A stretch of DNA of 64,000 nucleotides, taken from assembly GCA_964199315.1 (NCBI GenBank), contig OZ116708.1:27776001-27840000 (forward strand). The letters run 5' to 3'. Source of the DNA: Orbicella franksi (Eukaryota). Below are positions 22,322 to 52,500 of this stretch, piece after piece. Each line of letters opens with the position of its first letter. Position 1 is the first letter of the stretch. The position numbers were made by a program, and so were the translations under genes. Under the pieces are notes generated by a model. It saw only the letters and a program-made list of their open reading frames with translations, was not told where the DNA came from and did not search any database.

Positions 22322-23571
22322 CAGTGCATTCATAAGACAGACAGTAAACTGTGTCTCTGTGTCCTTTCAGCATATCAACCAGCGCACCTTCAGTTGTATC
22401 GTACACCTTTGAAGTTAACAATGTATGCATTAGTTTCCATCTCACAGTACAGAAAACAGAATATTGCTAAAGCTTTATGTTCGCAGATTAAACAGGGCGT
22501 TATCAAAAGGTGGAGAGTTCACATCATGTTTCATAAAGATAAAATGGTCATAGACATTTTGTTGAGTTCATGATCCATAACGTTTTAATTTGAGGGGCGA
22601 AAATTAAAATCAAACCTCCATTCTCCTCTCGCCCATGGTTACTTTGGCAAGAGGAGATGCTGATCAGGGCGGGTAAGGTTAAGTGAAGAACCCGGTCATT
22701 TAATCTTTAATCCGCCTTCCCCAAAACGGCTCACGAAAATCCCTCTAATTCCTTGATCATGGAGAATAGAGTAAGGTTCATTTGTTGTACTCATTTGTTT
22801 AATTATTTACAATGCCAACTTTCGTATGCTCTGTTAATAAATCATATTTTCAAATCGCCACCTTGAATAGACTGATTTGTTTGGAATGCCGAGTGTCAAC
22901 TGTCAGTTTGCGGTTTTCTAATCCCACACGCCATTTAATCACCTAAAAAAGACTTACATGGGGGTAGCTACTTGAAGTAGAAAAATAATACGCGACCTTC
23001 TGAATTCTCTTTGTATTTCACCGTTTAATATGACGGGGAAATAAAATCAATTAACACGGAAAATATTTTGTTTTTAATTAATTAAGCAATATCTCGTGTA
23101 CAGTGGCGAAAGATTTCGTGAGCACCACTTTAGCCGTTAGAACCATTTGAGCGCATTATGACATGGAGATGACAGCAAGAACGCGTTTTCTCAAATAAAT
23201 CAATACAACTTTGTCCATTTGTAAACAAACTATGAAAATCAGGCCCAGAACCTTCTTTCACATATATCTGTTTCGTTTGTAAATGTATAGTTACCAAGAT
23301 TAAGTTTCCAGCAGCAATGAGGATATACGAGCCATTAGGGCTGAAGATTAGGTCGTAAATCCTATAGAAAACCCCAAAAAGACATGACATTAGTAAACTT
23401 GGAGTTCACGTGGATAAAACTACACGAGTTGTCTGCCTTCAGATGGCTATAACGTAAACTGAATGTGTTTTAGTGAATAAAATCGCGATTCTCATATACC
23501 CACCACTGAGACTGCTTTGATTTATCCACAACTTTATCCAACCACAATCTATTCACTCGGGCCAGAGCCAT
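22322..23571 (-). CDS. Divergent duplicate of IFT122 coding exons 1-3 (alternative N-terminal cassette or short paralogue)
   Basis: Exon 1' 23571-23504 [22 protein letters not shown](W); exon 2' 23361-23295 [22 protein letters not shown] (67 nt, same as canonical); exon 3' 22406-22322 [28 protein letters not shown](G) (85 nt, same as canonical). GT-AG sites are present, phases 2/0/1 match canonical, and there are no stops. Confidence 0.85.
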
Positions 23572-24672
23572 AGTCGCAGCGATCCCCTGTTAACAGGGCT
23601 TAAGTGTTGAAGTTGAAATGCATTTGAAATGCTCGTAAATCTAAATGTGACGCGTGGAGAAAGTTTCTGGCAGTGCTCACTCATAATCCGCCATTGTCTA
23701 GCTTCTGTTGCGTGATCAGAGATCTAAAGATTGTATGAAGTTTCCAAAACATGTCTGGAACGTACGTAACGGAAAACGAGTTTAATAGCGAACCGTGTTG
23801 GCGTGGAATGACCTCAAAAAAATGATTGAACAGTCGGGTTGCATGACATGACTTATAATATGTCAATTATATACAAAAATATATACATATCTGTAGAAAA
23901 ATCTTACTTAGGAACAAAGCTATGTTGTAAATTAAAAATACCCTAAAATGTTTGATAATAAGATCAAGATGTTCACGCGTTCTGTTTAAAATAAAGTACT
24001 TTCCGCGACCTAGTCAGTTAAGATCAGTATTTCGTCCTTGATTTAATAACTTGAAAATGGTGTTCCATTCTTGGATGTTGTCGACAAAAATATGAAGATT
24101 TGTTGACTTAACTCTCAAGATAAAACATTACAGTTTGAACGCACATGAAAACTGTGAAAAGAACAATCACTGAGAAAGTTAATTGACAAAGTACGATGGA
24201 GTAAAAAAAAATGTTATGAATAACAACATCAGCATAATAAAAATAATAGAGACTGAAGTGAAATGAATCTACGACGAAATTTTGGAGATGAAATCTGAAG
24301 ATTGTTATAAAAAATTTAATGGCCCGTCTGAACTTTTTCAGATTTTTTTCAGCCATACGGCATACATTATTTGCCCCTGAAAAACCGCTTGTAAAGTTAC
24401 ATTTCAATTTAAACATCTATGCTCAGGAAGTTAAGCTAGGCTTTTAGCATGTCTCAGAACATCACGCAATACAGAAAGGAAGTCAAAATAAAGATCATGT
24501 CTAATAATAGTGAAGTGTTGAGTTGTTTTTATCTTCTAGAATTTCAGTCGTGCTATACTGCAGGCGCAAAAACAAAACAACAGTCAGTCATCTTTCATTT
24601 CCTTGTTTCAAACCGAGCTTTATAAAGGTAAATATTATTTTGAAGTTGATTAACTGAATTGATGCATATGGG

Positions 24673-25548
24673 TTGTCGTTGATCAATGATTCTAGAAAAC
24701 GTAATCAAGAACAGATTAGCTTCAGAAATGCCACAAACGAAGTGAAACGCACTAAGGGGAAGATGCAGAGTTCGAGTAGAATTCCACGGCGAGTAAGCGG
24801 TGAAGGAGACAGTGTTTCCTCTAATACGGACGTGAAAAAAGGCAAGCAGGAGACTCCTCAGAAAATATCATTAACTGGTCAAGGAAAAACTGCCAAGTTA
24901 TTGCGCCAGAGACTGGCATTCGCGTTAGCAACCAACACGAAGCTAAAATCGGATTCTAGTAACAGTGAGTCTGATCCAGAAACTACTGGTAAAGGGTCAA
25001 AGACTCAAGAGGGGAGAAAAACATCAATTCCACGAAAGATCTCTCAGGAAACTACGAAAAAAACAACTGAACAGCAGCATCTGTTAGGGGAGAAAAACAA
25101 CGAGGGCAATATACCAGATGCGAGCGAAAGAAGTCGGAAATTTGGAACAACGCAGTCTTTTTTGAGGAATGGCATTGATAATATTGAGCAAGGAAAAATA
25201 TCAACGGCGGATTTACCGAGACAAAAGAGACCCACGCGACTTTCCAATTTTTCTTCGGATATAAACAATGAAGTGCTCACTAACAATAACACAGCTGTGA
25301 CACTGTCACGAGATCCACCGAGCTTCAACGAGTCATTACCGAATATTCACGAAATAGCTACGAAGAAATCCAAAGGTATCACTTCGCTGGAACATGGCAA
25401 TTTTGACGTTATAGAAAGGGAGTTGTCCAAGCTAAAAGTGGAAATGTATAAAACGTTGGAAGATTTTCAAGAAATAAATGCCGTAACTGAAGGTGTGAAA
25501 ATGAAACTTGAAGAACTAAGGAGAGACAGAATTCGCTCTGCAAGCTAG
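24673..25548 (+). CDS. Orphan single-exon ORF: Ser/Lys/Thr-rich disordered region with C-terminal coiled coil (261 aa from first ATG at 24763)
   Basis: 876-nt open frame in AT-rich DNA; SRIP and TSIP motifs; heptad-like C-terminus IERELSKLKVEMYKTLEDFQEINAVTEGVKMKLEELRR. No family recognised. Confidence 0.65.
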   Translation: MSLINDSRKRNQEQISFRNATNEVKRTKGKMQSSSRIPRRVSGEGDSVSSNTDVKKGKQETPQKISLTGQGKTAKLLRQRLAFALATNTKLKSDSSNSESDPETTGKGSKTQEGRKTSIPRKISQETTKKTTEQQHLLGEKNNEGNIPDASERSRKFGTTQSFLRNGIDNIEQGKISTADLPRQKRPTRLSNFSSDINNEVLTNNNTAVTLSRDPPSFNESLPNIHEIATKKSKGITSLEHGNFDVIERELSKLKVEMYKTLEDFQEINAVTEGVKMKLEELRRDRIRSAS

Positions 25549-38167: not shown

Positions 38168-39217
38168 ATGGCTGGTACAACAAAGAATTTGTCGCAATAT
38201 AACGTCTCGGCACATGACAGTTACGAAGGGTTTACACTCGATACAGAAATGAAAGTGATTTTTTCATTCCTTGGTTTGGCTGCCTTTATAATTGCGCTGG
38301 CAAACAGCCTTGTATTTGTGTTGGCTTGGCACATGAAATACCTCCGCACTAAAACCAACTTTTTCCTTCTCAGTCTAGCGGCGAGTGACTTACTCGCAGG
38401 AGTCCTGGTGATACCGCTGGTGATATCATGTAATGTAGTAAGAGTTAACGAGTCGATATGCATAGCGATGGACATCTGCCAACGTGGGTTAGCTATTTCG
38501 ACAATTTTACACCTCTCATCTGCTGTCATGGAACGATACCTGAAGATCTCGTCGCCTTTTAAGTACGCCTCCATTGCCACAAAACCGCGCATTGCGGCTG
38601 TTTTGATTTCCGTGTGGATAACCGCAATTTCAGTATCGCTGGCTCAGCTACTCCTCATTTCCTCACCAGACATAATGAACATTTACCTCATCTACAACGC
38701 AACGGTCCTTTCGCTGTTTGTGTTCGTGCCATTCATCGTTACCGTTGCAGCCTTCATTCGCATCTATGTCATCATGAAACAGAGCAAAAAGTCAAGACAG
38801 AATTTGACTACGTTAGGGAATAACAACAATGTGCAGCGGAAGAAGAAACAAAGACGCAATGTCAAGCGATCATTGATAGTTTACTTTGTTATGTTGGTGT
38901 GTTTCGCCTGTGCATGGTTCCCGTATTTTTTCCTGACTCTATTAATAGACTTGGACACTTCACTTATGACCAGAATCCCGCAGTGGGTAAACGTGATGCT
39001 TTTTTTCCTAAAAGTCAGCTCAGCGCTTTTCAATCCGTTTTTGTTCACATTTTTTAAAGCGGATTTCCAGAGAGCGCTGCAACAAATGGCTTCAAGAAAC
39101 TGGAGCGGAAGAAGCGATGCTACCAAAGAGATCACGCGAAAATCTGGGTCCTACCGCTCTGCAAACCGATTCACATATCACACACACTTAAAAGAAAATC
39201 AATTTGAGATGTATTGA
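38168..39217 (+). CDS. Rhodopsin-like class A GPCR (aminergic/adenosine-receptor-like, cnidarian orphan type), intronless CDS, 349 aa
   Basis: Seven hydrophobic segments with LANSLV (N1.50), LSLAASDLLAG (D2.50), C3.25, MERY, W4.50, CFACAWFPY and NPFLF. An acceptor at 38097 suggests a 5'UTR intron. Confidence 0.93.
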   Translation: MAGTTKNLSQYNVSAHDSYEGFTLDTEMKVIFSFLGLAAFIIALANSLVFVLAWHMKYLRTKTNFFLLSLAASDLLAGVLVIPLVISCNVVRVNESICIAMDICQRGLAISTILHLSSAVMERYLKISSPFKYASIATKPRIAAVLISVWITAISVSLAQLLLISSPDIMNIYLIYNATVLSLFVFVPFIVTVAAFIRIYVIMKQSKKSRQNLTTLGNNNNVQRKKKQRRNVKRSLIVYFVMLVCFACAWFPYFFLTLLIDLDTSLMTRIPQWVNVMLFFLKVSSALFNPFLFTFFKADFQRALQQMASRNWSGRSDATKEITRKSGSYRSANRFTYHTHLKENQFEMY

Positions 39218-41752
39218 AAACAGAGAAATAGCTTGAATAGTAGATTATACAACGACGAAGGACTTGAGACGCAACCTCTTTTCTTTCTCTGCATTCCTCG
39301 AGGGATGAGGAGTAAGGACCCATCGGGACGAGGATTTTCCCGCGAGTGAGAGGTCTGGTGACGTGCTCCGCAGAGATCTGTTCAGCGCCTCTTATTGGTT
39401 CTCACTTACGCGCCAAAGATCAAAACGGCCAAAACCGACCAAAACCAATCAGCGACCTATCACTGAAGAGCTACGTCATCAACATGGGATTTTTAAGACG
39501 AAACTCTGACGTCACTCAAGCTAGAGAACAGCTATTTCGAGTGCGTGAAGAGAGGCATCTGTTTATTTCGGTTAATAACCGAGAAAAGCAAACATTTTGA
39601 TAATATTTTAGCTGTAGGATTGTTCTACATTACAACAGCATAGTCTTGACATTCTCTCATAATGTGCTGCATCTGGCAAAGCTGTCGTAGATTTTTTTTA
39701 CTGCCGAACCGTGCTTGTCTAACCAATCACGGAAGAGATTTTCATTTGATTGTCGAAAAGTAACTGGTTTTGCGTCAACTACGCTACACGATTGGCTTTA
39801 AACATTCGCGCAACTTTTTCATCCAATCAGAAGTAAAACCAAAACCAATTCTGACTCACTCGCACTCTTTTTCCCGCGAGTTTTGATTGGTTCACTGTAT
39901 TGTCCGTGTTCTTTGTGATTGGCTAGAGTGATTACTTTGGTTTTGGTTTTACGACACTCAGTTGAAAACTGCTCTACTATCTTTTTATCCGAATGATTCT
40001 AAAGGACGTCAAACTGTGAACCTTCTGTGCCCTCTCAACCGCCTGACATGTTTTCCCGCGCTTTGCACGTTTTCCTGGGTCTGTTCCATCCGTTACATGT
40101 CAGTTTTACCGCGTTTTTCAGCAAATATAAATTTTTGCTTTGGGATCTAGTTGGTTTGTCGTGCAACTAGCAGGCATTAATGATTGTTTGTTTTCAAAAT
40201 TGTTTACGATAGTTGGATTGACTCGCATGATGTGCACGTGAGAACATTCTTCTGGAAGCCTGAGTAGAGGCCACAACTTCGTTCCCAGGGTGCTTCTCAT
40301 TTCAAAGGTGGGGCAGCGCCCTGGAGAGGAGGTTTTGGAGGATAGTATAGTCAAAAGTATCGTCAAATTAGAGTCATTTTAGAGAATATAGATTTGAAAG
40401 AAATAAACAGAATACTGTGATCAAATATCGCGCGCAGCAGTTATTTCTAGTGGACCGACTACTAATTAGGTGTCGCTAAGCTCGACACCTAATCTTTGCG
40501 TGACGATAACTGGAGGTGAATTGATGCAGCGTTAGGCGCGATATCTACACTGCACAACACGCCTCGTGCAACACGGCAGCTGTTGTAGAGGGTATAGTAA
40601 TTGCAACGAATGTGAGCTCCCCTTCTGCCACGTTGCGCGCAGTGACATGACACCTATCAATCACTTCTCGCTCTCTGGCTATCCAATCTCTCATGCACCC
40701 AAACACAGCGTTTCTTTTTTTTTTTCGAATTGGAAACGCACTTAGTAGCTGTGATTCATTTCCCTTGCCGCTTACTTGATAAGGTGATCGTCCCCTTCTT
40801 GGTAACTTGAATATCACAATAATCTTTTCCCCTCGAATGCAACAGCCCGTGACTAAGATCCAAGGGAAAACGGGCGCTTCATTTCTACAAGTCTCGTACA
40901 AGTTAGTTGGGAGAACTCCAAAGTCGAGTACTATTTACGCTAACCCACGCCTTAAGCTCGATTTTAACTTTGAGAAACTCCCAAACGTTCTCGAGTGTTG
41001 ACCTAAGGCCATGCAAAAAAGCGCATTTTCATGTTTTTAAATAGGATACGTTTTTATGAAGAAAATCCAAGAGTGTGTACCCCGCGAGCAGTTAGTTTCT
41101 CCTAGGCCAACAAGAGAGAGAAACCGACTGCTCGCAGGTTGAAGTTTATGTGGAACAAATTTGTCCTAGATAAGTTAGACTCGTTTCAATTCCAGAAAAA
41201 GCCAGAATTTATTATCCTGTTTTGTATTACACTCAAACAATTCTTTGTGCAGACTCAAGATACTCCGTTGAATATTTTACGTACTTCCACTGAAGTAAGG
41301 CACTCTATATTGCCCACACTGTTCATTTTATACTTCATGTTTCGTTTGCTATGGAACACTCATTACGTGTAACCTCTCACAGACATTTCAATTTGGTAAT
41401 CCGAGGATGTATTTCGTTTCAAGAACACATGTCTAGAGGTTTCTGTAAACAGATACTGCAACACTGTTCAGTCTTGCTACTGGCCAATTCTACGATATTT
41501 TCCTGGTTGAAGAGTAATTATGGGTTTCAAATCAAACACCAGCCTATGTCATTAAACATTACAAAGTTGTGTATAAGCTTTTGAAAAAGCTCAAGAACTT
41601 GTCAGAGTTCTGAAATTCTGACAGGTCTCTCCTACTACGGCATCAGATACGTTAGTTCACACATTAAGCAAAGTTTGGCTTCCAGTGATTAAGCCTTAAA
41701 AGAAAGTTTTCAAAAGTGTTTTCAAAGTTCTCATATTTAAGAGAAGTCTCTT

Positions 41753-44700
41753 TTAGTTTGGCACCAGATCGTCAATGGACTTTCCTTCCATAAGACACTT
41801 CTCCATGTCAACAAGAAGCTTGACGCCATCGACGACTTTCTGAACGAGTTCCACCTCAGAGAAGCCCAGTCGGTCCAGATTTGACACGTCAAAGATGCCG
41901 TCAGTAGAGGCGGTGTCCACTCCTCCAGTTCCACGCTTCTGTAGGCGCAGCTTCTTGAGGATGTCTTCAAAGCGCTCGTCTTTTGATAACGTGGGTAGTT
42001 TCACGTGCACGCCAGCGCGCAAGCCCGTGCCCAGATTAGATGGGCACGTGAGTATGAACCCCAGATGCTTATTCCACATGAATGCTTTACCTTTCTTTTT
42101 CATGGCGTCCTCGATCTGTTGAAGACCTTCACAAAAGCGAGTGAAGACTTCTCTCATGTTGCCGCCCTTTTGCATGGAGATGACGCGTGTATGGTCCTCT
42201 TCGTTTACCCACACCAGCACGGTCTTCTGGTCGTTGTGCCAGATCCCGCGAGCATCGGGCCAATCCCGAGCCATCCCGGAAGACAAAAGCAGTGGTGAGA
42301 CCGGTTTATCAAACAGGAAGTGGTCTTCAATCAATTGATCTTGCTCTTGTGGTGTCATCTTATTCAAGGGGTAGTACTTTCCTTGTAAACTTCCTTTTAG
42401 CGTGTCTAAGGCTTCCACTACGACCTTCTCAACTTCCCGGCGTTCGGCACGGGTGCAGTGAGGTGGTAAGGCCAAACCCCGGATGCTGCGCCCAGTCCTA
42501 ACACGGCTTGAGAGGACGAAGTTGCTGTCCAGGTCTTCGCCTCCAACAAGATTTTGTGCGTTCAAGTCGGTCTTGTGAAGCGCGTCCTTCTTGTAGCCGT
42601 TGTGGCGTCCCTCGATCACGGGATCAAACAACTCAGCAAAGACATCGTAAGACTCTTCATCTCCAGCGACACAGCCAACTGTCATGATAAAAGGGTGGCC
42701 TGGATTGTCTACGCCTGTCTGAATGGCTTGGTCCAACGTGAAGCCTGAAGGTGTCTTCTTCACGGAAAGCTTGTCGTAAATTTCTTTGGTCAGGCATCTC
42801 GACATCCAGTTGTTGTGCTGGGAAAGATCTGGAAAGTTGCTGACTGTTGTTACTTCTCCTTTCTCGGCCTCGACAACGATTTGCCGCGCGGGTGTACCGG
42901 ACATGAGTTTCTCATACAGGCTGGTGATAGGTTTTCCGGCCTCCAGTTCTTTCTCCATTACAATCAGCAAACTGACACCGTCGACTACACACTGCACCTG
43001 CTCCACTTCAGACGATCCCAGTCGGTCTGCATTGGAAATGTCGAACGTGCCTCCAACTGCCTCGGTGTCGACACCTCCAACACCACGCTTTTGAAGACGA
43101 AGCTTCTTCAGGATGTCGGCGAACTCTTTCTGTTGGCTGACATGGGGGATCTTCAGGTGCACCCCACCCCTAAGTCCCGTCCCGAGATTGGACGGGCAGG
43201 TCAGAATGTACCCTAGATGTTCGTTCCACATAAATCCATATCCTTTGCCTTTAATGGCAGCTTCAACTTTGTTAAGTCCGGTGCAGAAACGCTCGAAAAC
43301 ACCTTTCATGTTCCCGCCCTTCTCCATGGATATAACACGAGTGTGGTCCTCTTCATTGACCCAGACGAGAAAGTTCTTTTTGTCATTGTGCCAGATCCCG
43401 CGGGCATCAGGCCAGTCCCGAGCCATGCGGGACGCGAGCAGAAGAGGAGACACAGGCTTGTCGAATAAGAAGTGGTCTTCGATAAGCTGCTCTTGTTCCT
43501 TCTCCGTCATCTTTGCCAGTGGGTAATACTTCCCTTTGAATTCGCCGTCCAAGGAGTCCAGGGCCTCGGTCACCAACGCCTCTACCTTGCGCCGCTCAGC
43601 TCGTGTGCATTGAGGTGGCAAGCTAAGATTCTTTATGCTTCTGCCGGTCCTCACTCGAGACGACAACACATACTTCTCATCAAGCATTCCACCAATAAGA
43701 TTCTCAGGATTCAAATCGGTTCTGTGGCGATCTGTCTTCTGGTATCCTCCATGGCGCTTCTCGATGACCGGGTCAAAAAGGTCTGCGAAGACTTCGTACG
43801 ATTCTTCGTCGCCTGCAACACAGCCCACTGTCATGATGAAAGGATGACCTGGATTGTCCACACCGGTTTGAATGGCCTGATCTAGCGAGAAGCCGCTTGG
43901 AGTTTTCTTGTCGCAGAGCTTTTCATAAATCTCCTTTGTGAGGCATCTTGCCATCCAGTTGTTATGCTGCGACAGATCAGGGTAGTTTCCGCTTGAAGAC
44001 TGGGAGCTAAAATGTTAACGAATCTTTGTCAGGATATGAAAAGACATATTCAAATAAAGGGAACTTTAAAAAGATCATGAATAATTGAGGGGACAGTGTC
44101 ATGGCTGATTATCCATAGTTGTCTTTCCTAATTTTCACAATACTATACAGATAGTCAATATTAGACAACATAAACACAAGTTACGAAGGTAAAACTTGAA
44201 AAAATGTAAGCCAAGTGTTTCATGTTGCGCCATCCTTGAAGAAGCTCAATTTACCGCTTGCTTCCTCAAGAGCGATCAGCTTCTAATTTCTCCTTACCGT
44301 CTCAATATATTGTCAATCTGACAGGTAATGAGAAAAAAGAAAATCAAGAACGTCGGTATATCCTTGTGATTATTGAGAAGAATTAATATCACCATCTGCT
44401 GGAAGGTTCTTACTAAGTGCCATGACCTCTTTTTTACTGTAACATATTTAGGTTCACCGCTTGCTCCAGGGCCTCACCTACGAAGCTTACACCAAACCGA
44501 AACTTGAGAAACATAATAGTTATGCAACGTTTTCTCGTGGTATTTTCTCGGTATGCACAGCTGGACGCTCCATGGTATACCAAGGCAAAGCGTTGGATAC
44601 TGAACTATTTTACACTACGCCATAGACAAAACAGTGGCCAACACACTTAATCAATGCGTCATTCGCGGAGTGCACGATGGGAAGGTTGGGTGTAATACCG

Positions 44701-47700
44701 TTAAGTGTCCAATAGCTTTCCTGTTTTCTGACTGGCTGTTTCTTTTTATGGCATGGGTATAGAACATATCATGACGTAATTTACTGAACGCATCTATGAA
44801 CAACGTACGAGCAATGATGACAAAGCCAGTGTATCTCCAGTGTAAGCCAGCCCAACCTTGTGGTGCGCCATAATTTAAACATTTCTAGTAGTGTAGTGGT
44901 TTACCTTGCTGCAGGTTTCGGTGCTGCTGCTTTCTTCATTGTCGATTCAGCTTGAGGGTTTTGTTCTACTTCAGGAGGAGGTTCTGGGTAAAAGCAAATA
45001 CACACAATCAGTTGATACCATGCCTAAAGGTTAACCTGTTAACACGTGCGCCGTGAGGGAAAGGGTGAAAAAAGAATCGGCGGGCGGAACGAGCCAAGAG
45101 GAGGCTAGAGTGAAATATCTGCGAGAACAAGCTTGGCCTCAGAGATTTTTTGTTTGGCCATTATCCATCCCCAGAGGGGCGAGGAGAAAAAAAACCTTTG
45201 CATCGTAAAGGATGGCACTGAACGAAAAAGCGACACCTAGACACAAGATACCTAGTGAAGATGCTTTGTTGCCGAACAGACTTTGCCGTCGGACTCACAG
45301 ATTTCGTCAGAAGAGACGAGATGATCAGGTCAGAACTTGATCTCTTAATTTCTTAAACTGGGGCACTCCGGCTGTTCTAATAATAACCAAATCGGCACTA
45401 AATAACGATTACGCGGCTCAACGCAATAGGCTGTGATTGTCTAGCTGGATTTTGGTCTTAGAAGGGTAGCTTCCTTTTAATGCAGCCACGACAAAGAGTT
45501 GGTTTGACTTGGAATACTCGAAAATATTCAAACTCCGTTCGTAAACAGTAAAAGCACCCGAAAAACGTTTAGATTGTGTGGCTAATCTTCACTTTCCTGT
45601 GGGATAAACCCTCGCGGAAACTACGTGGAAAGTGATCAGTATTCATGAAAACTTGCAAAGAAAACAAATCAAACAACTATTCACTAACGATCTAATGGGA
45701 TAAGCGAACACCGACGCTAATCAACGTTTGTGTGGCTCATATCGCAAATGGCTGTGACTGGCTAACTGGACTTCGAATAAACTGGCGGAACGGTCTAAGA
45801 ACGGCGCCATTCCCTTCAAAAATTGAGTTCAACATGAAAAACTCGAAAATATTCAAACTTGTTTGTAAACGACAAAAGGTATAAAAAGAACGCATAGATT
45901 ATGTCACCAATCTTCAACGTTGCTTGATGAAGCGCACGGAAATCATCTAGGAGGTGAGCTGTTTTCATGACAACAAATAAACAAAACAAACAGAATTGAA
46001 AGCAATATGTAAATATCTTAATGTGATCAAAGGTGTTCCATTGTACATGGACAGGTGAAGCCAAGTGGTTCCACAGTTCCTGTCCATTGCACGGACAGAT
46101 GATTCAGAAAACATCAAACTGAGTTCACAGTTCAACTTATGTGAATTTAAGCGGATTGGAAACATAACCAGGTTGTCGTTATCCAAACATGATTCAACCA
46201 ACGATAGTTTTAAGGGATTAACAGGAACAATAGCTGTCAACGAGTTCGTCGCAAACGTAATTGAATGGTTCAAGAATATGTCACCAACTCGAAAAGAACA
46301 AAAGGGAAAGTATTAAGCCGCGAAAAAAGTTTTCCAGCTTGAATTCCTGTTGCTTAGCAACAACCTGGTTTACCAAACAAGAAGTACAGATCACGGTTGT
46401 GGTTAGCTTAAAGAGAAAACTCTGAAATAAATATCAGAGAAATGGTGTGCAGTTGCTCTTACGAAATCTAATAACTAAGCCAAATCAAAAAGTGATTGCC
46501 AAAAATAAATAATAAAATATATACAATTGTGTGCTAACACAATGTCCATTCTCCGAGTCATCCATTGTACATCAAAAATTACTGAAGCGTTGTAAATAGC
46601 CATATTGAAATAAAACAATGTAAGCTGAGGCGAAATGCAGTAGTTTATGCAGTACATTGTTTTATACAGGGGAGTGTTACAGGAAAATAGATAAAAAAAT
46701 AAAGAGCTCAACCGAAATAGAGCCGTATTTTGGTGACGAGTTCTGCTGTTCATCATTTTCTTATGTCAGAATGTAGCCGAAGTGACTTCTTGGAGTGCCT
46801 TCATTAGCAACAAGCAATTTCGTAAACTTACTTTGTAAATCACTTTATACGTATATTTTGGCTATGAGCACTTCATCAATCTAACCGCCCATATTCTTGT
46901 AGACGTTTTAAATTGTTACAAATCCTTATAAATGAAGAACATGTTTCATTTTCAACTAAGATGCACCCTATTATAACCATTTTGCTATTTTGTTGAATTA
47001 TCAAAATCGATTGTACATAACTTTTGACATTTACGCGTTTGTGTATTTGAACTGAAAAATGATCTTCAAGTTGGAGATAAAACTAGTAATTTCATAACTG
47101 CATCACATGATGAAATTTGCAAGGATGGACTAAATAACGGCCTACCCACTAAACAGTGAAACTTACGGGGGAAGGGTGATGGAAACCAATATTAGCAAAT
47201 TGGAAGCGATTGTATTGATAATAAATTCACAGTAAATTATGATGCCATCGCGCTCTTAGAGCTTCATCGCATTAGTATAGTAACATTTAACAAAACGAGG
47301 CTATCAGTTTTAGTTGTAAATATGTCTTGTGGACTTTGAGGTCACGCTGAAGATAACGACTTTAAATGTCCCCTAAAATATCAATAAGATGCCGGCGAGC
47401 TATAAGTTCAATACCGTGTCAATTCACCTGTTACCTGTTCGTCAAATGATGCGATGTATCTGAATATAAGTTCTGTCAGAGAATGTCTAGAGGACAGACT
47501 TTTCAAATACATTTTACTATCATTGAGTAGAAATTACAAGGTTGTTTTCAAAAGAGTGTCTACGAGTTAAAATGACTTTGAGTAGATAACTATGAAAGCA
47601 AGTGTGGAGATGTTAATCGAACTAACCGAAATATAACGTGTTTGATTTCTGGTCAACACAGTTTAGATGAAGAATAACTGTTCATTTAATGACAGAGCTA

Positions 47701-49518
47701 GTAGAAGCTGAGTTGTTTTATCTACTGTCTTTATTTACTTTATATTAGCATATGTGTAAAATAACAACACTTTTCGTCGCTGTTAACATTTTGGGTGTTA
47801 CTTTGTAAACGTTTTTTAAGACTCCGGTTAAATTGAAAGCAGGAGTTTCAAAACCTCTTCAATATGCTTGTTTTTATGATAAGCAAATTTTTGTGCGTGT
47901 TTTAGCGGCATGCTGTTTTACACGTACACTTTCACAACGATTTCCCAACATATTCTGTTCCGCAAAGAGCAGAGGAAATAGCAGTCACCTACAGGAAAAT
48001 GCTAAGTTTAAATTTATGCAAATAAGCCATCAGCTAGTAAGTAAATTAGCCATTTCACCCTGAGTAGATTTTCCTAGATTTTGTATATATTGGTAAGGGA
48101 CAATTAAAGAGTTGTTTGGCTCAGACAAAATTTTGTTGTCAGTTGTTAGAGTTCTAGTTATGCTGCCATTTTGAAAATATGCAAATTAGTTGTAAGTAAT
48201 CTCGCAAATGTAAGTTGTGTTGATTCTTGATCTGTTGATTAGGGAAACAGAGTTATTTGGAGAAGAAAAACCTCTTGCAATTCGCGCAAGATCTAAGCAT
48301 ACAGCGGGTGGAAAATTGCGTCAAAATATCTTCTGTAATCAAATTAAAACGGAGACAAAATCAAACGCCGGCAATACACGGGAAATTTCGAAAAATTCGC
48401 TCTCGTTGAAAACACTATAAATAATGCATCGCAAAATGGCTGACTTCTCGCCAGCTACAATTTTCTGTTCAAGACGTTGACAGTTATAATGGATGCCAAA
48501 CATTCTGTTTCGCTCAACAAACGTGACCCACGCTAGAAATAAGGTGTACGTAAAAGACACAAAAGACAGCAGTCACCATCTGACACTTCTGCTGCATAAC
48601 CGATAGTTAACAAAAATAAACAGAGCCAGAGGCAGAGAGCGAGCACTCAGAATTTTGAAATCCGCCATGGCCGTAAACCAACATGCAACCTTAATGCGAG
48701 TGACTGCCGTATTCGCGAGCGCAAGTATATGAAATTTCTCTCTTTCAAACGCTTTGCATTTTCTAAACGCGTCGAAGGGGTCAAATTTATCGCCACTAGG
48801 GAAAAACATTGCCGCGCTTATTATATGATCAAAGGGATTATATAGATTCAATTCTACTTACATTAAACACCAAAAGTATGATTTTTGTCTCCTTTCTGAG
48901 TTTCCAGGCTCTGGACGTCGGAGATATCGGATACTTTCAAAGCAAGATTTGGTAAACTACGGTATAAAGTTCTGCCTAATCTTCTTCTATTTACCGGTTG
49001 CTATGTGTTCATCTGGTAAATTAATGCGACATGCAGCTCAATGAAGTATTATTTTCGATGAAACGAAATACTGTAAACTGAATCCCTTACTTGACTATAC
49101 TAGTCCTTGATAAATCTGTAATCTCAGGCTTGCTATATCCTGACCTTTTCCTGCTAGGATTGATGACAAAACGCGTGCGCAAATCTGTTGCAAATTCGAT
49201 TGAATTTACAATGTCCGGCGACCTCTGCTCCAGAGAAAGCGACAGTCGTTCTAGTAAATGTTCAAGGAAATTGGCTCAAATTCCACTTGCTTTAACACAA
49301 TATTTGCGATTAGTTTTGCTGAGTTCCCAGGTGCTGTGATAGATATCGGAAACGAGGAGTTTTACCGAGTTGAAGGATATCGTTGCTATGCACTCCGTCT
49401 TGCATATTCAAGCCGTCACGCAGCGCGAACCAAGTATTATAATTTACGACAAATGAAATAAGTTGAGTCTCTTACCTTTCGCCGGCGGAGGAGAAAGTTT
49501 CGAGCCTCCGCAACCCAT
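41753..49518 (-). CDS. CK: Two-domain creatine kinase, flagellar/membrane-targeted type, 791 aa, 3 exons
   Basis: Exons 49518-49476 ([14 protein letters not shown]), 44983-44905 ([26 protein letters not shown]) and 44006-41753 join in frame. Two complete phosphagen kinase domains, each with [38 protein letters not shown] and GGVDT (creatine-type specificity loops). Confidence 0.95.
46349..46361. promoter_or_regulatory. RFX X-box-like palindrome GTTGCTTAGCAAC in CK intron 1
   Basis: Perfect half sites GTTGCT/AGCAAC with a 1-nt spacer. Confidence 0.3.
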
Positions 49519-52500
49519 CACAGCTCTTGGTAAATTCCTTAACCACCCCGATAACTTAACTTTGGTAGGCCAGCTGATTTCTATTCCTGACTGATTGATG
49601 ACAAGCAGCGCGCGAAACTACGTTCTAAGTTTCTTAAATGGTAATACGTCACAAAACCAAATTAATGCTAATCAATGGCCCAAAGGTTGTAACAGGATTG
49701 CCAATGAATTTTCAACAATATTGAGTTGCATAATAGGTCCTTTGCAAAACCTGCCAGATGACTTCTGAAATCTTAAAGAAGACGGTTTTAGTACAAAATG
49801 GAATACCGAAGTGGAGAAAAAGTGATGGCTTGTTATTTGTAAGGTTGCAACTTTGACTATAGAACTCGTGGCGTTGTTAGTAAGGCAGTTAAAAAACATT
49901 CTAATTAAATAAATTAATATTTGAGTGGAAATGTTGAAATGGTGTTCTTTTTACTTTGTAATAAATCCGTTCACTGACTAATCTTGATCGATATAGGATG
50001 ATACTGGCCTCGTTTTTTTTTCGTGCGTGATCATCACGCGGATTATAGACTTCGACCGCGTCTCGGTCCATAACCACGCTAACTTGACCTTACGCTTGAG
50101 CAATAACGCATATCTTTAATTTGCTGCATCATCAGCATACTGTACACCAATCTGCATAACTTGAACGAAGAATAAGTTTACAGAACAATCTTTGAACGCT
50201 ATAGTTAGTAAATGAGCAGCGAAAGCTGATATGATTCTTGATGATTTGATGGCTACTCAGATCTCAAGAAGTGTAGTGAAACTTGACCGAGCATAAATCC
50301 GTCTAACTGACCCAAAATCGAGTAAATGTGAACTCTATCACGATATCATAAAACCAGGGATTTCGAACTTCAGCTGAGGTAACTTTATAATAAAAATACG
50401 CAACTGCAGTGCAACTGCAGGTGCGATATCAGAGACATACAAACAGTCTCGTTATCTGCAAACATTCAGGTATACATTGTTCTTTCAGTTTTATGCATAC
50501 CAAGATATCCATTACTTGTTCTAATCAGACCACCGGAAATCTAATGACAGACCTTTACATTGTTGTTTAAAAACGTTATTCATGCAAGAAAACAAAAGAG
50601 GTCTTAACTCTATGACAAGTGAAGACTAAGAAACAGAAGAGGTATTGCCCAATGCCTACAAATTATAAGCCGTGGTCTGTATGATATTAATATTGCTTTG
50701 TGCGTTTAATCGTCTTGAAAACGAATATTCAGCTTGTTCCATTAGCTTGTTCGCTCTCTGTTATACGTTTCTCTGCTAAAGTTGTCTTGAGGGCCGGGTT
50801 CTCGTTCTTGCTTTTCAAGCAACAAATCTACTTGTTTTACTGCAAATAAACAATCCTACAACAGTTCAATTTGATTTTGACATGAAAATTGTGTAACAAC
50901 CAATCAGGTGCGAGATGAAAGCGCAAGGAAAACAAACAGATGGAGAGGATCTTGATTGGAGCTGAAGAGGACCAAATTCAAGATGGCGTCCGGCTAGGAT
51001 GAAGCATCTTGAAAACTTCATCACTTTTCTGCATGAATTAAGGAAGCAATACAGAATTTAATTGAACTATCGGGAGAGAAAACTATCCAGTTCTCGTCGT
51101 AAAGTTGTAAAACCGCTCAATGCAAGTCTAAGATTAAAGAAATATTGTTTACAAGTTTATACGTACCCTTAGTGTCAGAGGCTCTTATCCTCTTTATTTC
51201 ATTTCATTCACATTTGAGTATCCCATCCAAACTGCAGTCGATCAGAGCAGTTATTCATTGCTGGCGACTGTTTAATGGCTTGGACATGACGGATAAAAAC
51301 TATTCTCTGTTGTTCGATATTATGGATAAACACAATAAGGGACCGGCGTTTTCTCCCCTTCTTTTCAGAATTGTCGTTTTCTTTGTGAAACATTAGTCGT
51401 GTCTTCCTGATGCCGTTATTTATCACCGATATATCGCCATACATGTATTAACCCGGAAGTGGTTCCAAAACCGATAAATACATCCATATGTTTGATAACC
51501 TGAAGAGCCATTTATCGTTTTCGAAGTGCCGATCATCCCAAAATTAAAAAAATCTTGTCATGTGCCGACAAATGGACATTTGACAAGCCAAAATTTTGAC
51601 ACGATAAGGGGTACCGTACGCGTGCTCGAACCGCTTGTAATATAAACCGAGCTTCTAACTGACTCCTGAAATGTTTACATCGAATATAGAACGCGCTTGC
51701 AGGACGACCTGTTTCCACTTTCAATGCACCCGCTGATGTTTGAGGTTAACTTAGTTTCGATAGCTAGTTGACTATTTTCACTGTCACTGAAATGAATAGC
51801 GAATATTGATTCGACACATTCAACGCTCACCGGCCACTGAACGTATCAGACTCCGCTCCGAATGGGAGCTTCAATCCAGTGACATTCAGTGAAAAACGAA
51901 CGAGAGGGAACCAACAACGTTTACCATTCTTTTGATCATATTAAAAATGCGTAAACAAGTACTAGCTGGGCAAGATGAACGCTTCGCCGATGCCGGTTGC
52001 TGCAAGGCTGTTCTTTTTTGTTCAGTACCTCTGTAACTCAAATTGTACTACATATCTTCTGAACAGATTTGGGATATTTTTTACTTTCACGGCTTAGGAG
52101 AAACAGCCGAGACCGAGTCAAACAAGGGAGGTAAACGAACCCGGAGAAGTTATGGTCGAATTCGGTCGACAGGATGTTGTTAAGGCCAATAAAACATTTG
52201 GTGCACCTTTACTAATTCTCAGCGTATATTAACCCTAGCTTACCTTGTGAAGATTTTAGCCTGATAGTATATCCCGACTGAAAACTCCAGCACACCTTTA
52301 GTCGGTCTCCGTACTGTAGTTGTGATGAATTATTGCAAGCGACGCTGTACTTATCTTACACAAAAAAAATCACTCAACCATATCATGGACCATATTTGTA
52401 TACATTATTAATGATCTGTGCTCTCGAGTATGATGCTTTTCGGCATGGCGATTGGTTTTCAATGTTTGGCCTTATTCTCCTCATGTTTAACTAAAATTTT

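Follow-up and report, generated by a model that had tools for sequence, protein, structure and literature searches.

The 64,000-nt stretch of Orbicella franksi DNA analysed here (contig OZ116708.1; hereafter the window, within which all positions are counted) carries on its minus strand a creatine kinase (CK) gene that encodes two CK domains in a single chain and appears to belong to the flagellar class of these enzymes. Flagellar creatine kinase (fCK) is a textbook enzyme of the phosphagen shuttle, built by gene triplication and regarded as a trimer that is conserved all the way from cnidarians to deuterostomes. The features of the coral gene, in the direction of its transcription, are the following (a slash marks the splice site).

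52244..52384, minus strand: exon 1b, a non-coding 5' untranslated region (5'UTR) of at least 141 nt with the donor CACAAG/gtaagc at 52244/52243; its 5' end is a minimum, given by the loose end, 139 nt long, of one contig.
49476..49600, minus strand: exon 1a, with at least 82 nt of 5'UTR and 43 nt of coding sequence (49518-49476; 14 residues and the first base of codon 15), donor G/gtaaga.
44984..49475, minus strand: intron 1, 4492 nt, GT..AG (CT..AC on the plus strand), with the joint 44983->49476 in an RNA contig.
44905..44983, minus strand: exon 2, 79 nt, encoding the Pro/Ala-rich tether; acceptor cccag/AA, donor AG/gtaaac.
44007..44904, minus strand: intron 2, 898 nt, GT..AG, with the joint 44006->44905 in three RNA runs.
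41753..44006, minus strand: exon 3, one uninterrupted exon of 2.25 kb; acceptor ttttag/C, TAA stop at 41755-41753.
42908..44005, minus strand: CK domain 1, residues 42-407 (Pfam, phmmer envelope).
42860..42907, minus strand: inter-domain linker, residues 408-423.
41756..42859, minus strand: CK domain 2, residues 424-791 (Pfam, phmmer envelope).
41167..41752, minus strand: 3'UTR of about 586 nt, its end calculated arithmetically from the 3044-nt contig of RNA run X4, whose position 2734 lies at 43900 in the window; a polyadenylation hexamer starts at 41213.

The joined coding sequence of 2376 nt is in frame and comprises 791 codons with a single terminal stop, giving a protein of 791 residues. 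A preliminary description of this DNA, made from the letters alone, had read a 43-nt first exon that supplies the N-terminus MGCGGSK and is spliced in frame through the Pro/Ala-rich tether to exactly two CK domains and a TAA stop; the exon coordinates, the fit to the myristoylation pattern, the Pfam assignments and the RNA contigs all agree with that reading. The Kozak context of the exon 1a ATG at 49518 is good (gtgATGG). No other in-frame ATG precedes it in the exon-1a transcript, and the 82 nt upstream of it contain no ATG; a further methionine codon, Met30 (ACAATGA), sits inside exon 2. The program-made list of open reading frames (ORFs) lacks the true N-terminus, as the same description had remarked, and gives instead a 733-residue ORF from an internal methionine (MARCLT). 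Most public models of the gene likewise miss it, many of them being 733-residue entries and several being ORFs started in intron 2.

Splicing was read from contigs of RNA runs aligned to positions 43900-49650. Three runs (X1, X2 and X4), each from a different study, have spliced contigs across the junction between exons 3 and 2 (word depths 100-290), and the junction between exons 2 and 1a was found in X4, in which the 3044-nt contig (125+79+2840 nt) is colinear with the genome and extends to 49600, 82 nt 5' of the ATG. The predicted splice of the first exon is thus borne out at both of its steps. All 8 sampled words of exon 1a are present in 14 coral runs labelled as RNA, which as evidence of expression is suggestive only, since pre-mRNA or DNA can contribute to such matches. 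A raw-read RNA run (X23) yielded no reads matching the stretch.

The protein contains exactly two complete PF02807+PF00217 pairs by Pfam (E=7e-68 for PF02807 and E=6e-156 for PF00217). The two domains are 73% identical to each other at the protein level and each is 72-74% identical to the solved structures of vertebrate CK-B/M, while all 19 of the 19 catalytic and creatine-pocket residues checked against the reference CK-B, including Ile69, Val325, Cys283, the NEED box and the phosphate-binding arginines, are identical in both. Strong purifying selection acts on both domains (dN/dS 0.03-0.14 versus four coral orthologs), the linker being relaxed. Judged by these residues, both domains appear to be competent, active CKs. 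Activity can vary between the domains of other contiguous kinases, and by comparison with some contiguous phosphagen kinases it could be supposed that one or both of the coral domains have lost catalysis or now act on a different guanidino substrate; in domain 1 the RGTGG loop indeed carries a Thr322->Val replacement, and the C-terminal tail is non-canonical. The retention of every checked residue in both domains (among them the NEED box and Ile69/Val325, the pair for creatine specificity), the fact that the closest solved structures are true CKs and the selection on both halves of the protein make such a shift or loss of function very improbable.

Assemblies are well known to collapse where tandem domains are nearly identical, and the preliminary description had itself pointed to a collapsed assembly concealing a third domain as something that might overturn it. 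We tested and rejected this possibility. At 73% protein identity the domains are too diverged to collapse; a six-frame search of the 497-Mb genome found only these two domains at this locus, single-domain CK genes on three other contigs, AK-like (arginine-kinase-like) genes on a fourth and no three-domain CK gene anywhere; and a permissive tblastn search of the whole window with the anthozoan first domain (D1) gave no further CK-like match, intron 1 containing no CK-like remnant. As the 3044-nt contig is colinear with the genome and its spliced length equals that of the genomic exons exactly, there is no room in it for a third domain of 1.1 kb. Transcript contigs from at least four coral lineages encode two-domain ORFs of 760-796 residues with both start and stop, and the independent genome of Desmophyllum has the same exon structure twice. 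The chance that the two-domain appearance is produced by a collapsed tandem repeat or by a mis-joined gene model is therefore practically negligible. Among the features by which an fCK is recognised, the N-terminal myristoylation signal (Met-Gly..Ser/Thr at position 6) is present in the exon-1a form, and in place of three contiguous CK domains there are two, whether one looks at the window, at the genome or at the transcripts; for this reason the protein is classed here with the fCK lineage as a two-domain variant and not as a classical trimer.

Every scleractinian relative that was recovered (Desmophyllum, Porites and three further lineages) is two-domain as well, the Desmophyllum and Porites entries being direct orthologs with 86-88% identity to the O. 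franksi protein. The Desmophyllum pertusum protein OS493_034913 (786 residues) has the MGC start, two domains and the same three-exon structure; the Porites lobata protein (755 residues) is two-domain in a model that is N-terminally partial; and the transcript-derived P0149 (787 residues) as well as P0070 (796 residues, starting with MGCAPS) combine two domains with an MGC start. In a search of 5.8 billion proteins all matches of at least 85% identity are 796 residues long or shorter, and no scleractinian-like three-domain protein was found among them; when the first 75 residues of the Desmophyllum protein served as the query, 13 matches were obtained, with no further annotated full-length coral models among them. 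The two-domain state is a clade-wide coral variant already present in databases, and the architecture as such is not unique. The preliminary description had allowed that two-domain acylated CKs might already be the documented norm in anthozoans, and this holds insofar as all the scleractinians recovered have the form and it is deposited in databases; it does not hold for Nematostella, which is three-domain, and a literature search that did not cover the main specialist papers found no account of a two-domain creatine kinase from corals or any other organism. The Desmophyllum genome also carries a tandem second copy of the gene (L014:17855-17897 + 22716-24962), 94% identical to the first and annotated only as the 583-residue fragment OS493_034914. 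The first exon of this copy encodes MGSGGSK, in which Gly2 is kept and Cys3 is replaced by Ser, and so the copy may possibly be myristoylated while having no candidate for palmitoylation.

With the three-domain fCKs of sea urchin, Chaetopterus, Ciona and Nematostella vectensis (P0004, 1158 residues) the coral protein has in common the short tether, the contiguous complete CK domains (70-77% identity per domain), a linker of the type found between the second and third domains (D2 and D3) and the N-terminus MGC(G)xSK, which also occurs in three-domain fCKs of Saccoglossus, Branchiostoma and others. It differs from them in having two domains instead of three and in an alternative first exon that removes the acylation signal, and its domains all lie in one exon, whereas the Nematostella gene has introns inside D1 and D3. 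In the domain tree the second coral domain groups with D3 of Nematostella and of the three-domain hexacoral-like proteins P0011 and P0036 (support 92/93), and on this sequence evidence it is the ortholog of D3. The first coral domain falls inside the anthozoan D1/D2 clade (88/86) and is nearest to the D2s: those of Nematostella, of two anemone-like proteins and of P0011/P0036 form a group (90/80), to which it is the sister (84/86). Its grouping with the D1s, however, was not rejected by the approximately unbiased (AU) test (p=0.29). Sliding-window identities hint at a D1-like N-terminal half and a D2-like C-terminal half in this domain, although separate trees of the two alignment halves are polytomies. 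The per-domain phylogeny, named in the preliminary description as a check, assigns the second coral domain to D3 and the first to the joint D1/D2 class.

The region that follows the first coral domain gives a comparison independent of the tree. The unusual tail and linker at this place (..SLY.KL.SG.PAR.I..; motif G..AR.I[VA]) stand between D1 and D2 in all corals, and in Nematostella, P0011 and P0079 they are found only between D2 and D3. Taken together with the tree, this comparison indicates that the coral protein consists of the N-terminal tether, one domain of the D1/D2 class with a D2 tail, the D2-D3 linker and D3. The position of the gene points in the same direction. An intron-less ORF at 38168-39217 on the plus strand encodes a G protein-coupled receptor of 349 residues, of the rhodopsin type with seven transmembrane segments (7TM), and is convergent to the CK gene; a 7TM ortholog (43% identity, E=1e-65) takes the same convergent downstream position at the Nematostella fCK, and this shared neighbour supports the orthology of the two CK genes. 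The 7TM and CK genes form a conserved anthozoan gene pair.

We consider the coral gene to be the stony-coral ortholog of fCK, encoding in one chain two complete, apparently active CK domains behind a Pro/Ala-rich tether and derived from the trimer by loss of a domain in the scleractinian stem, and we put the probability of this reading at about 80%. One unit of the D1/D2 class was probably deleted, as the composition of the protein suggests. Intron loss in an ancestor would have produced a single exon of three tandem repeats, from which an in-register, in-frame deletion, by unequal recombination between D1 and D2, would have removed one unit in the scleractinian stem, leaving in place the tether at the N-terminus, a tail of the D2 type followed by the D2-D3 linker, and D3; this mechanism is what we infer from the structure of the gene and its relatives. 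The closest three-domain relatives in gene structure are the loci of P0011 and P0036, from two metagenome-derived animals (L019:1006-4452, L020 and L021:9528-13339), in which all domains lie in one uninterrupted exon and the linker between D2 and D3 resembles that of the corals. In P0036 at least, an MGCAPSK exon in phase 1 lies upstream, and its big exon starts in the same phase as exon 3 of the coral; L021 carries an upstream MGCAPSKNKPGPASK exon.

The preliminary description had left it open whether the dimer arose by loss or retains an intermediate state. It was correct in seeing here a genuine contiguous two-domain CK of the fCK lineage, and of its two histories loss has the better support. 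If the two-domain state were instead ancestral in Hexacorallia, the anemones and other three-domain lineages would have duplicated their first domain later. Such a course of events would agree with the placing of anthozoan D1s and D2s in one clade with the first coral domain (88/86, and 99/95 in the C-terminal half) and with the closeness of the Nematostella D1 and D2, which share 82% identity, rising to 100% in one 60-residue window, and came out as sisters in the first quick tree. The similarity of the two Nematostella domains is patchy, however, as expected from gene conversion, and the ancestral dimer is less parsimonious because D2s from separate three-domain lineages fall into one group, with the first coral domain as their sister, which places the D1/D2 split before the coral branch, and because medusozoans (Hydractinia, Rhopilema) and many bilaterians are three-domain. 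We therefore regard an ancestral dimer with later duplication in the anemones as improbable. In the Nematostella protein itself (locus L013) the identity between D1 and D2 reaches at least 90% over several windows besides the one at 100%, and this patchiness suggests gene conversion between the domains, which would blur domain phylogenies.

Contiguous two-domain CKs of the MGC type also occur outside the corals, in the tunicate Molgula tectiformis (B5MGP7, 785 residues), the sponges Amphimedon queenslandica (XP_003383985, 780 residues) and Oopsacas minuta (768 residues) and other sponge-like entries. Relative to Ciona and Styela, the Molgula protein (P0090) keeps D1 and D3; a hydrozoan-like protein (P0087), an MGC-type two-domain CK, keeps D2 and D3 relative to Hydractinia; and in the sponge proteins (P0132 of Amphimedon and P0093 of Oopsacas) the domains pair with each other within species. 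These patterns suggest that the non-coral dimers reached two domains by other routes than the coral, and that the domain number changed repeatedly in the MGC-type CK family. The two-domain state, which the preliminary description had set against the described fCK trimers, recurs in sponges, in Molgula and in the hydrozoan-like lineage; no paper on any of these non-coral MGC-type proteins was found in the literature search. The number of domains in fCK thus appears to be evolutionarily flexible, with a strongly constrained, clade-wide two-domain form in the reef-building corals. Similar reductions elsewhere kept different domains, and nature has thus supplied a set of constructs in which the purpose of the extra domains can be studied.

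The only solved two-domain templates, the phosphagen kinases 4RF6 and 4WO8, are likewise contiguous dimers in one chain, but come from kinase lineages other than that of the coral enzyme (38-40% and 34-36% identity, respectively), use other substrates and arose by fusions independent of that of the coral. The identity of the coral protein with a two-domain arginine kinase (AK) of the Anthopleura type was considered and rejected: the per-domain scores with 4RF6 are about half of those with true CKs, and the identity is 38-40% versus 72-74%. In the AlphaFold2 model of the 750-residue product of exon 3 the domains are good and the linker is predicted to be helical (helices at model residues 361-368 and 373-382), whereas the predicted template-modelling score (pTM) of 0.53 makes the arrangement of the domains one of low confidence, and as modelled it does not superpose on the solved templates; Foldseek comparison of this low-confidence model with the PDB gave template-modelling (TM) scores of 0.56-0.61 with a root-mean-square deviation of 8.5-9.3 A for the two-domain AK 4RF6 and TM scores of 0.40-0.43 for 4WO8. 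The cytosolic dimeric CKs (B/M) and the sponge 'protoflagellar' CKs (Tethya, Suberites) have the same catalytic domain, with 70-76% identity and all catalytic residues in common. These enzymes, however, are single-domain subunits which associate into non-covalent dimers and have no acylation signal, in contrast to the two fused domains of the coral behind their lipidation signal.

That signal is present in one of two forms of the transcript. The dominant contigs of X1 and X2 run from exon 2 into a sequence that is absent from positions 43900-49650, and the first 30 nt of this alternative 5' sequence are identical to 52246-52275, a match for which the number expected by chance is 0. Exon 1b, thus located, contains an in-frame stop and no in-frame ATG, and translation is for this reason predicted to begin at Met30 in exon 2 and to yield a 762-residue protein with no acylation signal, which would be soluble. 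Since X2 (exon 1b) and X4 (exon 1a) share an organism code, both forms occur in one species. A related coral with 93% identity has a transcript contig with a non-MGC 5' end and an ORF beginning at the exon-2 methionine; between exon 1b and the 5' end of that transcript, or the Desmophyllum locus, there is no detectable similarity. The CK gene also yields transcripts that skip the acylation exon, and the protein is consequently not obligatorily acylated. The preliminary description, which had called the enzyme an acylated CK, was therefore right about the dual-acylation signal of the exon-1a form and has to be narrowed to it. Database proteins of 762-764 residues from related corals (P0281, P0287 and P0288) are genomic ORFs that run from an ATG within intron 2 (cf. 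44007-44100 in the window) into exon 3. They were considered as the anchor-less isoform by their length and rejected as such.

The N-terminus GCGGSK of the exon-1a form matches the PROSITE-type myristoylation pattern G-{EDRKHPFYW}-x(2)-[STAGCN]-{P}; Gly2 and Ser6 fit the signal, Cys3 is a candidate for palmitoylation, and the same N-terminus is found in Desmophyllum (P0068) and in the coral transcript P0149. If the protein is processed as sea-urchin fCK and other MGC proteins are, Met1 would be removed, Gly2 N-myristoylated and Cys3 palmitoylated, and the lipid anchor would keep the exon-1a isoform on the flagellar or ciliary membrane, where the flexible, disordered tether might allow the two active sites to make ATP from phosphocreatine beside the axonemal dyneins. 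The coral fCK would then form the distal end of a phosphocreatine shuttle fed by a mitochondrial CK. In the sea urchin, fCK is reported to be a contiguous trimer at the flagellar membrane, with myristoylated and non-myristoylated pools next to each other (PMC3080659, citing Quest et al. 1997). The alternative exon of the coral offers a possible transcript-level route to two such pools.

Data from other corals are consistent with action in sperm, though not specific to this gene. In mature testes of Euphyllia a 'creatine kinase, flagellar' transcript (CL12240.Contig1_All) and a mitochondrial CK are among the most up-regulated genes (PMC7579821), and in Montipora a CK (g9290) is the top sperm-enriched transcript (PMC7441918). 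The enzyme could nevertheless be mainly a somatic CK of ciliated and other energy-demanding coral cells, its acylated form serving the plasma or ciliary membrane generally and not the sperm flagellum. The full-length transcripts come from colony metatranscriptomes of several studies at the word depths given above, exon 1a words occur in the 14 RNA-labelled runs, and the dominant isoform has no anchor exon in two of the three contig runs. Gonads may, however, be present in colony samples, the 'flagellar' and other CK transcripts are enriched in testis or sperm of the two corals just mentioned, and the characterised ortholog class is sperm-flagellar (PMC3080659). A mainly somatic role seems to us rather unlikely, and it concerns the site of action and not the identity of the enzyme; both sites may hold. 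The coral fCK is a candidate determinant of sperm motility and of ciliary energetics, both of which bear on fertilisation success under stress.

Several points weigh against the reading of the gene as a flagellar CK reduced from a trimer. The affinity of its first domain (D1, D2 or a hybrid) is ambiguous on the tree supports, AU test and half-alignment trees given above. The polarity of the change, loss as opposed to an ancestral dimer, depends on the accepted position of Actiniaria and on the medusozoan and bilaterian trimers. Exon 1a was seen joined to exon 2 in one run only of this species group. Lipidation, the membrane or flagellar location and catalytic activity are predictions, the CK transcripts of Euphyllia and Montipora are only candidate orthologs of this gene, and the high RNA depth in many colony metatranscriptomes may mean that expression is largely somatic, in ciliated epithelia, rather than sperm-specific.

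The retained domains and the alternative first exon can be brought together, though only tentatively. An in-register deletion in an intron-less repeat exon may have brought the ancient flagellar CK of the stony corals down from three domains to two, and its anchoring may then have come under transcriptional control, so that the promoter of exon 1a would give a dually acylated form of the flagellar or ciliary membrane and the promoter of exon 1b a soluble one, both with one and the same catalytic exon. We hold this combined picture to be possible, but short of an even chance. If it is true, it describes a genetic switch for pools known only biochemically in sea urchin sperm, and it implies that three domains are not required for fCK function, since the tunicate and hydrozoan-like dimers keep different domains. 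The alternative first exon offers a simple, testable mechanism for dividing one enzyme into membrane-bound and soluble pools. The details that are new here are this anchor-less first exon and the map of which parts of the protein were retained.

Other members of the coral phosphagen-kinase set lie elsewhere in the genome. Two convergent single-domain CK genes with introns, 63-71% identical to the query domain, are located at G000:C14:4655846-4663049. To the same set belong one more single-domain CK, carried by C15, another of greater divergence, carried by C5, and the AK-like genes of C13.

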